From the NCBI GenBank assembly GCA_025603075.1, contig MU626272.1, forward strand, positions 129,634 through 193,633: a stretch of 64,000 nucleotides of DNA, read 5' to 3'. Below are positions 54,629-61,540 of this stretch, one piece after another (position 1 is the first letter of the stretch; each line of letters starts with the position of its first letter). Origin of the DNA: Neoconidiobolus thromboides FSU 785 (lineage: Eukaryota; Fungi; Entomophthoromycota). Below the pieces are notes generated by a model. It worked only from the letters and a program-made list of their open reading frames with translations. It did no database searches and was not told where the DNA came from. Both the position numbers and the translations under genes were made by a program.

Positions 54629-56136
54629 TTAATTAGATTCTGGTACAATTGTCTTTGGTAAAGTTTCCTTTAAATCTGCAACTGCATAAATAAATCCTCC
54701 TGTCATTGCTGCATTCCTGGCCAATTGCTCTGGCTTAAGAACTTCCATACGATCCCCTGCAGTATGGTGAAAAGTAAAATAGCTTAAAGTGGAATTATTC
54801 TCAGTTTTTGATGATAGTGATGCACAAGGAATTCCTCTTGAGCATAAATATGAAATGTCAGCATCTCCACCTTGGGTTTCTAAATAAAGTATTTAAAGCT
54901 GAATAATAAAAAGGGAGAAATTTTACCTTTAACGCCCCCAAAAGTCGTATGCCCTAACAACTCTTTACCAATCGAAGTAAAAATAGCAGTAGCTTCGCTA
55001 TTTCCAGAGAAAGCAAACCCATATGGTTCAAAAGCTCCGGAATCCGATTCCATGGCAAGAACATGATTTTCTAAATTATTTATATTTTCTTGGTAGTATG
55101 TTTTACCACCAGCTATCCCAGCTTCTTCATTTGTCCAAAATATAGCACGGAGAGTACGACGAGGCTTAAGCCCGAGGTTAACTATTTGACGAAGTACTTC
55201 CCAACCGATAAAAGCACCAGCGGCGTCATCCATAGCACCAACGCCAACATCCCAAGAATCAATATGACCGCTTAAAATAACGATTTCATTTGACTTTTCA
55301 CTTCCTTTGATCTCAAGGATCAAGTTACGTGTCTTAGCTTTACCTTTTTCTAGCGTGGCTCCCATCTTTAAGGTAAGTTTTGGCTCTTTATAAATATTGC
55401 ACTTATGGTTACCATTTTCTTTTGCTCTTTTTTGAATTCTGGTTAACATTTGGGCATCTTCTACAGTGACCACAGCTCCTGGTATTTTTGCTTCTTTCAT
55501 TGCCCCAGTATGTGGGGTATCAATAGAAAATGGTGTAGCAGCACGAACTAAAGCAGCAACTGCACCATAGTTTTCTGATAATGAAGCGCAATTTTGTCGA
55601 ATATTAGAAGCGGCACCATAACCAGTCCAAGCAAAATTACACAACACAATCTTTTTCTTTAATTCCCCTTTTTCACCTTTTTCTTTGAGATCATCTTTAG
55701 AAACCACGGTGACCACTTCAGCAGTTATACCATCCTTTGGTGTACCAACCGATCTTCCGAGACCTAAAAAGTTGAGCTTTACATCACCTCTAGTAGGCGA
55801 ATGATATACTAGAGATTCTTCATTACGTTTCCAATAGTCTGCTGTCACATTTTGGGTATATGCTATCAACCCATCCTTTCTGGCTTGCTTTTGTATCCAG
55901 TCAATAGAGTCTTCTAACGCCTTTGAGCCAGTTATGCGATGCCCATACAAGTCTGTCATTTCAGCTAATCGATCCCAGATTATGGTGTTATTTTGGGTTG
56001 ACGCTAACAATCTGTTAACGTTATCTTTAAGATAGGATAAAGTTGGAATTTTAAATTCTTTTTGGACATTCTGAGAATAAGCGATATTGGAATAAATCAG
56101 TGCTACACAAAAGTTAGAAGCAGTATTGAACTTCAT
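54629..56136 (-). CDS. Secreted M28 metallopeptidase, carboxypeptidase Q-like (PA domain), 2 exons
   Basis: Signal peptide; DRLAEMTDLYGHRITGSKALEDSIDW, GHIDSWDVGVGAMDDAAG, WTNEEAG, AMESDSGAFEP; second exon GGDADIS..YFTFHHTAGD completes the Zn ligands. Confidence 0.9.
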
Positions 56137-57411
56137 TTGTTAACAATGATGATAAATTTTATTTAATGTTGATCTATTTTAAATCTTTTTATATTGTTTT
56201 AAATTACTATACCATTATATTTAGTTCAGCCCCTAATCATCTTTTTTAAACCAGATTTACTCTTCTACTTATAATGTTATTCACTTAAACAAGGATTTTT
56301 TGACTCAATAAATGACCAAGATGTCTCCAATAATAGAAAGCTAGATTAAAAAAGCGTACTTGTGACAATTAAAATGATAAAAGGAATTGATAAAAATGGA
56401 TAGGTACAGTTTAAGGATGAGTTTGTTTTAATAATACTTTCAAGAAAAGTGTAAATCAAGTATACATTTGATTATTTCTAAAAATATGTAATTATACTTT
56501 GCTTTGATTAAATAAAGCTGTTAATAATATACTAGTCAAACGACTAACAAGAGTATTATTTATAGTTTGAAATAATAGTTGCTTTGGATAGCAAGTACAT
56601 TTATAATGCTGTTTATTTAAATAACATTCCATCAAATTTATATTGATTAAAATTTGTATTTGAACACTTATGTATTGTTTATTTTGCTAATTATTTCAAG
56701 TTTTTCTCATGACCAGTCAGTCATATTTAAATATTCGCTAAATTTATGATTTTGGAATAAATTTAGAATAATTTAGAGTATCATATATTAAAGCTATCAT
56801 ATAAAGTATTATATATTCCATAATTTCCAAAATTTCAACAAAAGACATCTAACTACAATTTGTTCTATAATTAATTAAAGTCATATTGCTTATTTTATTT
56901 TTGAAAATATATCAGATAACATTTAAACATACAATAGCAGAGTTTGTTGCATTTTTTTATTTTTTTTGTAAACAAAAACTAATCAACCATGTGCTTATTT
57001 GCACTAATATTGTTTTTATCATCGTATCGCCATTAAATCGACTTCAGCTTTAATGTGTTTTTAAAAGACTAAAAGTTAAGTTCATTTATGATCTGTTAGT
57101 AATTTTCAATATAAATATAAGCGTATAAATAAATTAGTAATATTAATTATACAAATTTTAGGCTTATAGCAATTTCATAAAAATCCAGACCCTATGAAAC
57201 TGTAAATAGTTTAATAGCCACTACATTTTATTCTTACCTTAAATCCTTATTCTCTCAACTGTCTAAAATTGTGTTTTTATCCTTGTTTTTTATAACAATC
57301 AGAAATAATTAGGTCAGATTATCTTTTATATATCCATTAGTCACTGTTTAATTAATTTTTAGATCAAATTTGGAAAATTTCTGTTTAGTATAGGTTTTGA
57401 TTTCATTATTT

Positions 57412-57509
57412 GGGGATGTTTTTTTTAACTTCATTTTTTTTCCATTTTTTAAGTGCTATTTAAACGAAAAGTTTGTTAGTAAAATTCTCAAATACAAAAA
57501 TACATTCCC
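57412..57509 (-). mobile_element. MITE family A copy 12
   Basis: Flanked by ATTT / ATTT (non-palindromic 4-bp TSD). Confidence 0.9.
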
Positions 57510-57789
57510 ATTTAGTAAGATCAATAAAATTACTATAATTACACACTATCAAATATCATAATTCCATAGCAATAAGTGACAACAATTAAACAATAATGAT
57601 GATAGACAATTTTATTACGAACTTTGAGCCTTTAAGTAAGAGAGTATTTTGAAATACTAAATGCAAAGAAACACACAGGCGTTCTATATTTATCACTTAT
57701 AAAACAGATCTTTCAAACTCAGGACCAAAGGCTTTGTGGTTAATTTTCTTTGATAAGCTTAAAGTACTGAGAAGTAAAAGAAGGCAATT

Positions 57790-57886
57790 GGGGATGTATT
57801 TTTGTGTTTAAGAATTTTACTAACAACCTTTCCACTCAAATAATGCTTAAAAAATGGAAAAAGTAATGAAGCCAAAAAAATATCCC
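57790..57886 (+). mobile_element. MITE family A copy 13
   Basis: Flanked by AATT / AATT. Confidence 0.9.
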
Positions 57887-58698
57887 AATTATTTTTTGGA
57901 ACGCTTTTGAACTGTTATTTTCAAAAATTAAACTTATTTTGGACTGCTTGAAAATTTTATGCAACAAGTTTGAGAAAATTGAGTGCTTTTTTAACTCCAA
58001 CAAAATCAATCATTTTAAATAATAACTTTACTCTTGAAAGTCTTTATGAGGTCACTTGAAGCTTTGTTCAATGAAAAATGACCATTAACAAAATAAATTT
58101 TATTTGAGTGCCGTTAGCTTTAAAGGATGGCAGTTCCTAGAGTTCAAACGATAAAAATTAAAATGACTTGTGAATATCACAAATGCTTAAAAGCTAGTTG
58201 GCAATGATATTCAGAGCCTACAATTATAATGGTGAGATAGAGAATTAATGTAGATTTAATTTCCTTCATTTCCTTATATGGCTTTGTACACCTTTTTTAT
58301 CAAATTTTTATAGTCACTGATAGGTAATTGTAAATCAATAATATCAATAAAACATAATATGTAGTATTGCAGCTGACCCAACTCTTTTATGACCTAAATA
58401 ACTACCTACTTAAGAATAAAAGTTGTATTGAAATTCGATAAAATGTATGGACTAGGCTTTAAGAAATTAACTATGCAAATAACCACCTGCCTATAAAGAT
58501 TATCGCTAAAAAAGACTTAAAAGAGTTCTAACAACTGTATGGGTTGGTTTAAAGAACTTTAAAAAGGGGAATTAGTAATTTACAGAATTTTAAACCGTTA
58601 GGCAATAATATAGGAATTTTAGAAGGTCAAGTGGTTTTAAAACCATATTTTGAGTAATATATAATGCCTAAGTTTAATTATTGATTTTTCTTTTTAAA

Positions 58699-59647
58699 AT
58701 GGATAGTACTACTTTAGAAGGAAACAATATCTATAATCAAATAGATTTGAACAATTTCAATAATTTAATCTGGTATCAAAGATACAAATTTCAAGCTTTT
58801 AAAATTGTTGATAATTATACTTTTCATTACAAAACCACCTTGATTTCAACTTTCTATCTAATTGTTTTGATCTTTGAATTCGGCTGTCGTAAAATTTAAT
58901 TATTCTCATAAAATGTTAATGTTAATAGTAAATAATATAGGATTTGCGTTTGGAGAAAGGGATAATGCTCTATCTAAAGATCGATCTCTTTTGCATCTAG
59001 TATTTAGTATATTGGAAATTCCATTTATACTATTATTTTTAATAGAATTGGCTCTAAAATTATTCACATTAACTAATGTTAAATTGTATGTCTTTCAATT
59101 ATCAGTAATGGATTCTAGTTTTTTGGTGTTTAATATTGCTGCAAGTATATTTGATATTGTCAAACATGAAACTTTATCTTTAGAAATTAAAATGCTAGTG
59201 GCAGCAGCCAGACTATTATTGCAAGTGTATATAAATAAGCAAGTAATCGAAGTGATCGAAGAATGCGTAATTTTAATATTTAAGCTAATGAATCAATTAA
59301 TAATAACAAACTATTAGGAAGATAAAATAACTGAACGATACAAAGAGCACTATAAGTCTATTGTGTTGAAAAACGAAACTATGAAATTAATTAATAAAGC
59401 ATTAGAAGTGGAAGTAGAAAACTATTCAAAAACTATAAGTAGTATAGAAGCCGAGGTTAAAGAATTAGATAGTGAGATGATTGAAACTCATCGAAAATCA
59501 TGGGGTGCTCTTGTATCACCGATGCTATCAGTTAAAGTGAATATACCTGTTATGAATGAAAGTTCTTTCAAAAATCAACGTAAATCTAAAGAGTTAAAAA
59601 GAACAACGGAATATAGAAAAAGATGCAATTCATTTAGTAACTTTTAA
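58699..59647 (+). CDS. Standalone voltage-sensor-domain protein with C-terminal coiled coil (degenerate Hv1-like), 3 exons, 281 aa
   Basis: Introns 58889-58940 and 59267-59317 (GT-AG) join three ORF fragments in frame. S2 FLIELALKLF, S3 MDSSFLVFNIAASIFDIV, S4 with a single Arg, then a heptad-like E/K-rich tail. Confidence 0.72.
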
Positions 59648-60242: not shown

Positions 60243-60342
60243 AAATATTTGACTTTTTATGTTTAAGAATTTTACTAACAATTTTTCTATTAAAATAGCG
60301 CTTAAAAGATGGAAAAAGTAATGAAGTCAAGAAAAATACCCC
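60243..60342 (+). mobile_element. MITE family A copy 14 (left end degraded)
   Basis: TTTAAGAATTTTACTAACAATTTTT...AGCGCTTAAAAGATGGAAAAAGTAATGAAG...ACCCC-ATAT; left boundary approximate. Confidence 0.82.
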
Positions 60343-61028
60343 ATATGTTTCCATAGTATTGGTATCGTTAACTTACTCTATTTTTTACAACATAAAAGTA
60401 GGTTGACTTTATCCTCATCTGAAAACCGGTATAACATGTTTTCGGTAGTATTTCTTCCATATTTTTCAAGCTGAAACAAATTTTCTATCATAAAGCAAAT
60501 TTAATATACAAATCATTAGAAGTGTTTGTTATTTGGATTAAATGCTATATATTATTACTAGTGACAATTACCTATCATCCTATCAGTGTAACTTTAGTGG
60601 CATTATTCTATAAAATGTCCCTGGCTAACTTTATCACAAATTATTGTTTAGGAAATATGTTTTTTTAAAATTATCAATAATGTAAATCCTATCTTACTAT
60701 TGTTCAATTAATCATATATATAATACTGGTAACCATGCCATTATTATTTTTTACTACTATATTTGAAGAATCGTTATGTTTGTAATATTTGAATTTTACT
60801 TGAGTTTTTATTTGCAAAGGGGTTTACAGATTTTTAAAATGATAGCTTTTTTAAAACGTAATTTATTTTTTGAATTATTGATTATTGATTATTACTATAA
60901 AAATGTTTACAATCATTCATAAACCCTTTTATTCAGGACTCATATTGAACCTGATTTTTTAAATATTTTATACTAAATCTATATTTACTGTAGTTCTGTT
61001 GATTGTCCTATCTTTTAAACTAAAATAT

Positions 61029-61126
61029 AGTGATGTTTTTTTGGTCTCATTACTTTTTTCATCTTTTAAACATTATTTGAGTGGAAAGATTGTTAGTAAG
61101 ATTCTTAAACACAAAAATACATCCCC
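61029..61126 (-). mobile_element. MITE family A copy 15
   Basis: ATAT-AGTGATGT...ACATCCCC-ATAT. Confidence 0.87.
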
Positions 61127-61155
61127 ATATAGAGAATTATGTGAATTTATTATAT

Positions 61156-61253
61156 GGGGATGTTTTTTTTGATTTCATTATTTTTACATCTTTTAAGCGT
61201 TATTTAAGTGGAAAAATTGCTAGTAAAATTCTTAAATACAAAAACACATCCCC
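61156..61253 (-). mobile_element. MITE family A copy 16
   Basis: Intact termini, ATAT flanks; 29 bp from copy 15. Confidence 0.92.
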
Positions 61254-61442
61254 ATATGTTATTTTTCAATAGTGGGTTAAGTGACCATTAGTGATACAAA
61301 ATGTTTAATAAAAGATCCCTTTGGTTAATAAACGAAAATTAAATGGCATAATTTATTATAATAATAATTAAAAGTCAACTTTACATTATGATAATAATAC
61401 TGAATATCTTATTAATACTTGTAACTAATATTTAAATAATAT

Positions 61443-61540
61443 GGGGATGTATTTTTGTGTTTAAGGATTTTGCTAATAATTTTTCCACTCAAATAGCACT
61501 TAAAAATGGAAAAAGTAATGAAGCCAAAAAGAACACCCCT
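61443..61540 (+). mobile_element. MITE family A copy 17
   Basis: ATAT flanks; about 390 bp upstream of the I78 inhibitor gene. Confidence 0.9.

Follow-up and report, generated by a model that had tools for sequence, protein, structure and literature searches.

A family of pore-less four-helix membrane proteins in Neoconidiobolus thromboides that lacks the Hv proton-channel signature

Can a small membrane protein with the layout of an Hv proton channel, and neither of the sequence elements by which such channels are known, be counted among their relatives? The question is raised by a three-exon gene of the fungus Neoconidiobolus thromboides FSU 785 (Entomophthoromycotina). The gene lies in the final 64 kb of contig MU626272.1 (positions 129,634–193,633; assembly GCA_025603075.1), and we refer to this whole stretch, which has a GC content of 27%, as "the window". 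The product, KAI9297985.1 (P0001), is annotated publicly as "hypothetical protein K502DRAFT_346623". Hv channels are minimal voltage-gated channels. Their homologs are recognized by a selectivity Asp in the first transmembrane (TM) helix, S1, and by the motif RxWRxxR, which reads RxWRxxK in fungi (PMC10377628). Because both elements are absent from all four paralogs of the P0001 family, we do not file the family as an Hv channel; judged by its sequence, it is not a canonical one. We favor, with about as much doubt as confidence, the view that the family branched off, and diverged very far, from the pore-less voltage-sensor domain (VSD) of Hv type, and that its members are dimeric, largely voltage-insensitive, and not gated proton channels. 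Two parts of the question of descent are best graded separately: derivation from a VSD of some kind is likely, with considerable room for doubt, and derivation specifically from Hv could equally well be true or false.

Gene model, paralogs, and selection

A preliminary description of the locus had predicted a spliced, three-exon product of 281 amino acids (aa). An exhaustive HMMER search of 1.84 billion representative proteins with exon 2 (window 58931–59266) returned three proteins, the best of which was KAI9297985.1, and the predicted product is identical to it. Hand-built gene models of 277 and 285 aa, which use another acceptor or donor, were dropped in favor of the annotated 281-aa model. 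P0001 has three intact paralogs (P0002, P0003, and P0004, the last added by a profile word search), with identities in the family of 29–57%, and all four proteins derive from the one genome of N. thromboides. The P0002 gene shares its contig with the window and lies ~118 kb upstream of the P0001 gene. It is annotated as KAI9297939.1, a "partial" protein of 172 aa; an intact exon 3 (L003:3621–3953) follows after a 56-nt GT..AG intron and brings the product to 282 aa. KAI9297939.1 and the adjoining 80-aa gene call belong to a single intact gene for 282 aa, which the public annotation splits; the annotation would be improved by joining them.

The positions and phases (1 and 0) of both introns are common to all four paralogs, as is the length of exon 2 (326 nt). 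The introns are short, with intron 1/intron 2 lengths of 52/51, 52/51, 48/56, and 42/47 nt in the four genes, and their GC content is 0.12–0.23 vs 0.26–0.31 for coding sequence. In the P0001 gene, retention of intron 1 leads to a stop at codon 67. Intron 2 is in frame with exons 2 and 3, and no stop interrupts it in that frame before the TAG of its acceptor (59315–59317); if it were retained, the product would end after 188 aa and lack the coiled coil described below. Across the four genes, intron retention leads to an early stop in seven of eight cases; the 48-nt intron 1 of P0002 is stop-free and in frame. Comparison with the paralogs thus supports the predicted splicing of both introns of the P0001 gene.

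An open reading frame in AT-rich sequence, rich in miniature inverted-repeat transposable elements (MITEs), might be a pseudogene or might have arisen by chance, and some features of the locus would fit such an origin. The GC content of the coding sequence (0.28) is scarcely above that of the flanks, P0001 has no Pfam domain, and open stretches of ~120–150 codons arise by chance in simulated windows of matched composition. Indeed, in simulated, dinucleotide-matched 64-kb windows, the longest stop-free run was 118 codons on average and reached 152; the open stretch of 148 codons at the locus is therefore not rare by chance at 27% GC, and we dropped open-frame length as evidence of coding. By contrast, the paralogs leave little room for either origin. 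The ratio of nonsynonymous to synonymous substitution rates (dN/dS; Nei-Gojobori) is 0.21–0.36 across all six paralog pairs, values that are approximate because dS is 0.9–3.3, and all four genes are intact at these distances, with conserved intron positions and phases. Among P0001, P0002, and P0004, dN/dS is 0.11–0.35 in each of four domains, and the bootstrap 95% interval of the uncorrected pN/pS lies below 1 in every domain. On the branch of P0001 itself, the ratio is ~0.29 (least-squares split of distances among the three closest paralogs). Nucleotide identity of P0001 to P0002 and P0004 is 0.66–0.73 in exons vs 0.43–0.50 in the 300-nt flanks, and the gene sits between MITE copies, not within one. 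Since four paralogs keep the exon structure with dN/dS well below 1, a chance origin is excluded; the young-pseudogene alternative fails on the same ratios, and both possibilities are effectively refuted. The frame is intact across the three exons, as the preliminary description had noted, and the locus is, from the comparison of its paralogs, a real, functional, and selectively maintained gene.

The membrane helices and their possible ancestry

Hydropathy shows four hydrophobic segments in P0001, and AlphaFold2 places helices at residues 25–68, 74–109, 115–137, and 141–243, the last uninterrupted, followed by a disordered stretch and a final helix at 258–280. Given the single helix 141–243, helix 4 appears continuous with the coiled coil, with no pore domain between or beyond; nothing hydrophobic follows helix 4 in the hydropathy profile or the model, i.e., an S5-S6 pore domain is absent. 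Residues 168–229 follow one shared heptad register, with 61–67% hydrophobic residues at the a/d positions in all four paralogs, and the coiled coil most likely makes dimers. Both termini are predicted to be cytosolic, and the four TM helices to form an up-down bundle. Exon 1 encodes the cytosolic N-terminus, which contains the conserved pattern Y-Q-R-Y-x-F-x-A-F-K-I-V-D-x-Y-x-F-H-Y-K, and most of TM helix 1. The layout of four TM helices and a coiled-coil tail without a pore domain is as the preliminary description had it.

After the coiled coil comes a basic tail (aa 233–281; window 59498–59644) that is conserved in all four paralogs. Its family-wide motifs are H-R/Q-K-S-W, S-V/I-K/R-V-x-x-P-I/V-M, R-K-S-x-E-L, and R/K-C near the C-terminus; in P0001, the pattern reads H-R-K-S-W...S-V-K-V-N-I-P-V-M...R-K-S-K-E-L...R-C. 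In the P0001 tail, R-K-S occurs twice (within H-R-K-S-W and within R-K-S-K-E-L), and a Cys stands close to the C-terminus. The two R-K-S sites resemble sites of basophilic kinases, and the tail may bind a kinase or another partner.

The residues inside the membrane both recall and depart from a voltage sensor. The motifs picked out in the preliminary description are all present as cited: IFEF at aa 58–61, FLIELALK at aa 96–103 (starting at window position 59036), MDS at aa 120–122, with residue 121 as its Asp, and a helix 4 with one Arg and no Trp. Their conservation is given here in the order P0001/P0004/P0002/P0003. In helix 1, Y53 is invariant and position 60 is E/E/E/G, with Gly in P0003; no paralog has a D or E before position 60 within this helix (aa 46–66), so there is no mid-helix Asp. 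In helix 2, P91, F92, F96, and E99 are invariant and position 103 is K/K/R/R, giving F-x-x-E-x-x-x-K/R. Helix 3 has acids at position 121 (D/D/E/D) and position 135 (D/D/D/E). The charge-transfer-center motif, in which an acid sits one turn below the Phe of S2 and S3 contributes an Asp, is thus present in the family at the level of motifs. Residues 147–162 of helix 4 in P0001 are KMLVAAARLLLQVYIN (letter by letter, K-M-L-V-A-A-A-R-L-L-L-Q-V-Y-I-N). K147 is found in P0001, R154, Q158, N162, and K163 are invariant, and R154 is the sole conserved Arg. The S4 pattern of a basic residue at every third position is absent, the polar residues 154, 158, and 162 being spaced four apart. RxWRxxR/K is found neither in helix 4 of any of the four paralogs nor in the six frames of the window.

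Kinship with voltage sensors is plausible, if unproven, on several leads: the motif pattern and architecture just described, the neighbors of the protein in ESM-Atlas, and a weak Foldseek list rich in voltage sensors. In the ESM-Atlas feature search, the neighbors of exon 2 are three small eukaryotic clusters of PF00520 Ion_trans, with scores of 0.88–0.90. The top cluster (score 0.90) shares 184 features with exon 2; according to the tool, at least 170 shared features are seen in nine in ten true family members vs one to two in ten chance matches. Exon 3 gave unspecific, coiled-coil-like bacterial clusters, and in the ESM-Atlas search by shape, all matches were to the coiled coil. When the full model was compared with the PDB by Foldseek, the 50 best matches (all with E ≥ 0.14) were mostly S1-S4 domains, including Nav1.7 VSD chimeras, NavAb, CavAb, TRPV1-3, TRPM8, TRPA1, TPC1/2, KCNQ1, Ci-VSP (4g7v), and SLC9C1.

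A substantial body of results weighs against this kinship. Sequence searches are the first part of it. Pfam hmmscan, run with the exons, with each of the four proteins at full length, and with the TM domain of each, gave no match to PF00520 Ion_trans up to E = 10, and phmmer and hmmsearch of the PDB, with single sequences and with the four-member profile, returned no Hv1, VSP, or voltage-sensor chain up to the same threshold, the matches obtained being to coiled coils or due to chance. No relation to TMEM266 emerged from the PDB or Pfam searches either. Outside N. thromboides, no relative was found among the 1.84 billion representative proteins, in word scans, or in metagenome contigs, and a word search with the TM-domain profile gave nothing beyond the four paralogs. 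In ESM-Atlas, 10 of 10 family-bearing matches of exon 2 fall in one clan, which counts among the leads in favor, yet one third of shuffled proteins also give this result. Finally, another pore-less protein encoded on the same contig, a 207-aa product described below, has no detectable relation to the P0001 family (negative hmmsearch scores; hhalign probability of 0.5%), and so no chain of intermediates is established.

The fold comparisons are the second part. Foldseek, run against the PDB with full and TM-only models, gave no match at E ≤ 0.001, and its best E-value, 0.14, belongs to a designed protein and not to a sensor domain. In VIA-align, designed soluble four-helix bundles (Z 13–15) rank ahead of the sensor domains of TRPML, TRPV, PKD2, TPC2, and SLC9C1, which reach Z 10–12, where values below ~13 are uninformative for helical bundles; ligand-binding domains of chemoreceptors are among the best matches, and neither Hv1 nor Ci-VSP is in the top 50. 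The membrane-protein matches also include cornichon and cytochrome oxidase subunits. The AlphaFold2 models were built on an alignment of only four sequences, with pLDDT (predicted local distance difference test) values of 72 over the full length and 76 for a model of residues 24–172 alone. Because a model from so few sequences is probably an idealized bundle, fold comparison has little power either way.

Taken at face value, these results would fit an unrelated, lineage-specific orphan: a generic four-helix TM bundle with a coiled coil, whose likeness to Hv1 is convergent or coincidental and which serves as a dimeric membrane anchor or adaptor without ion-channel ancestry. Such a protein would be expected to lack Pfam and PDB similarity at any threshold, to be matched first by generic and designed bundles, and to have relatives in one species; the four-residue spacing of its helix-4 polar residues, unlike the every-third-residue spacing of S4, points the same way. 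However, the neighbors found by the language model are specifically Ion_trans clusters, and the weak Foldseek list is strongly enriched in S1-S4 domains. Moreover, the combination found here is characteristic of Hv1-type proteins: four helices in the membrane, a coiled coil joined directly to the last of them, and exactly the spacing F-x-x-E-x-x-x-K/R. On balance, we consider an unrelated origin unlikely, while giving it real weight. The preliminary description had called P0001 an Hv1-like sensor that has lost its signature. The layout and the absence of the S1 Asp and RxWRxxR are upheld; the Hv1 kinship itself is left without a significant match in Pfam, the PDB, or Foldseek.

If the family does descend from an Hv-type sensor, it would have kept the inner part of that domain (the Phe and Glu in helix 2, the helix-3 acids, and a single Arg in helix 4) while losing the S1 Asp, the Trp of S4, and the periodically spaced charges of S4. 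With a single conserved Arg, little gating charge is possible. The buried R154 and its counter-charges E60, E99, and D/E121 would then form a structural salt-bridge network rather than a moving gating charge, and a product built in this way would therefore be largely voltage-insensitive and not proton-selective. We infer, from the residues present, a lack of both gating and conduction. Held as a dimer by its coiled coil, the protein may act through protein-protein contacts of the coiled coil and the basic tail. It could regulate or scaffold partner proteins, among them perhaps other Hv-like proteins bound through the coiled coil, or it could provide a weak constitutive pathway.

Functionally, the main alternative is a pathway for residual leak, with E99, D121, Q158, and N162 as its lining. 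In its fullest form, this alternative makes the family a still-conducting Hv relative, in which these four residues replace the canonical Asp-Arg filter and a pathway for protons or small ions, whether constitutive, weakly voltage-dependent, or pH-gated, runs through the helix bundle. The conserved buried acids and the polar stripe of helix 4 would suit such a pathway, and unconventional Hv channels with leak and shallow voltage dependence are on record (AcHv3, with LPWRxxR; PMC10377628). The S1 Asp, and R2 with its adjoining Trp, are missing from every one of the four paralogs, however, and we regard conduction by this route as improbable.

A more specific scenario concerns the family as a whole. 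A single ancestral Hv gene could have expanded into charge-depleted, pore-less proteins (four here) that act as "dead-sensor" subunits, pairing with each other or with a canonical Hv through their coiled coils and so tuning or silencing proton conductance. We know of no such regulatory principle for Hv channels in any organism, and we offer the scenario as a long shot. Within the window, regular-expression scans and a hidden Markov model scan of all six frames found neither a canonical Hv nor a further family member. What the family means depends on its descent. If it derives from Hv, it is a natural experiment on the sensor scaffold without gating charges, Trp, and selectivity Asp, and pairing with a conducting subunit could readily come about through the coiled coil. 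Otherwise, its interest is ordinary, that of an orphan group of membrane proteins restricted to one species.

Coordinates and genomic surroundings

The features of the gene, its paralogs, and its neighbors are collected in Table 1. MITE-like repeats flank the P0001 gene on both sides without overlapping it. One MITE-like copy is also found in the P0004 locus (L001:4599–4709) and one in the P0002 locus (L003:1822–1912). A Peptidase_M28 gene lies upstream of the P0001 gene, and a Peptidase_M28 copy on the minus strand upstream of P0002 is 84% identical to it in nucleotide sequence over 308 nt. The peptidase gene and the P0001 gene were therefore duplicated jointly, in a segmental duplication within the contig.

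Table 1. Features of the P0001 gene, its product, its paralogs, and its surroundings. Coordinates are window positions unless a contig or locus is named.
Feature	Coordinates	Strand	Basis or remarks
Exon 1	58699–58888	+	exact mapping of KAI9297985.1 and paralog alignment; aa 1–63 plus one base
Intron 1	58889–58940	+	52 nt, phase 1, gtaaaa..atatag, GC 0.13, GT..AG
Exon 2	58941–59266	+	aa 64–172, 326 nt; end of TM1, then TM2, TM3, TM4
Intron 2	59267–59317	+	51 nt, phase 0, gtaatt..tattag, GC 0.16, GT..AG
Exon 3	59318–59647	+	aa 173–281 and TAA stop; coiled coil to ~aa 232 (~59497), then basic tail
TM helix 1	58834–58948 (split by intron 1)	+	aa 46–66; hydropathy, AlphaFold2, conservation
TM helix 2	59000–59074	+	aa 84–108; hydropathy, conservation
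TM helix 3	59099–59161	+	aa 117–137; hydropathy, AlphaFold2, conservation
TM helix 4	59189–59248	+	aa 147–166; conservation across paralogs
P0002 (KAI9297939.1)	MU626272.1:70,155–71,107 (L003:3001–3953)		282 aa with exon 3 joined; 56% identical to P0001
P0003	contig MU626285.1		282 aa; 31% identical to P0001
P0004	contig MU626580.1		282 aa; 57% identical to P0001
MITE-like repeats	57398–57894, 60244–60349, 61015–61500		direct and inverted; 74–91% alike
Peptidase_M28 gene	54629–56136 (L004:5931–7438)	−	upstream of P0001 gene
Second copy of block	L006:5873–7539 (Peptidase_M28), L006:10001–10953 (sensor-like gene)		same contig

Two other genes of this contig deserve mention. A 14-3-3 gene (L004:3124–4031) lies ~6 kb upstream of the P0001 gene, which is probably a coincidence. 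At L007:19453–20181 (MU626272.1:80,317–81,045), a gene with two introns encodes the 207-aa pore-less protein referred to above, which combines four hydrophobic helices with a short coiled coil; three splice models fit its annotated length. Its helix-4 stretch reads F-R-L-I-F-V-Y-L-R-V-S-I-N-N, and it has no Pfam or PDB match.

Comparison with known systems

The closest likeness in layout is to Hv1/HVCN1, which is small and pore-less too, has its N-terminus in the cytosol, and spans the membrane with four helices, the fourth of which runs into a C-terminal coiled coil; the F-x-x-E-x-x-x-K/R of helix 2 and two acids in helix 3 are likewise shared. The P0001 family differs in lacking the mid-S1 Asp and RxWRxxR/K, with one Arg and no Trp in helix 4, and in having no detectable sequence similarity to Hv1. 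TMEM266, too, is a pore-less Hv-like domain protein without the selectivity Asp and without proton conduction, and it has a coiled coil after S4. It keeps its S4 charges, however, and is a working sensor, whereas the P0001 family retains a single Arg; it is also a protein of vertebrates, and no sequence relation between it and the P0001 family was detected. Also known as HVRP1 (C15orf27), this vertebrate protein is described as a voltage sensor that is related to Hv but does not conduct (Papp et al. 2019; cited in PMC10377628).

Fungal Hv channels, including SlHv1 and AoHv1, are 204–262 aa long (Zhao & Tombola 2021, PMC7910559), compared with 281 aa for P0001, which has its conserved basic tail in addition. 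Only one Hv per fungal species has been found (PMC10377628), whereas the P0001 family comprises several paralogs in one genome. The S1-S4 domains of TRP, TRPML, PKD2, and TPC channels offer a different likeness: they, too, are TM bundles of four helices, and their S4 carries few charges or none. Of the membrane proteins that match P0001 in fold, they rank among the best, although at Z 10–12 they do no better than unrelated helical bundles. These domains are always joined to an S5-S6 pore; the bundle of P0001, by contrast, stands alone with its coiled coil.

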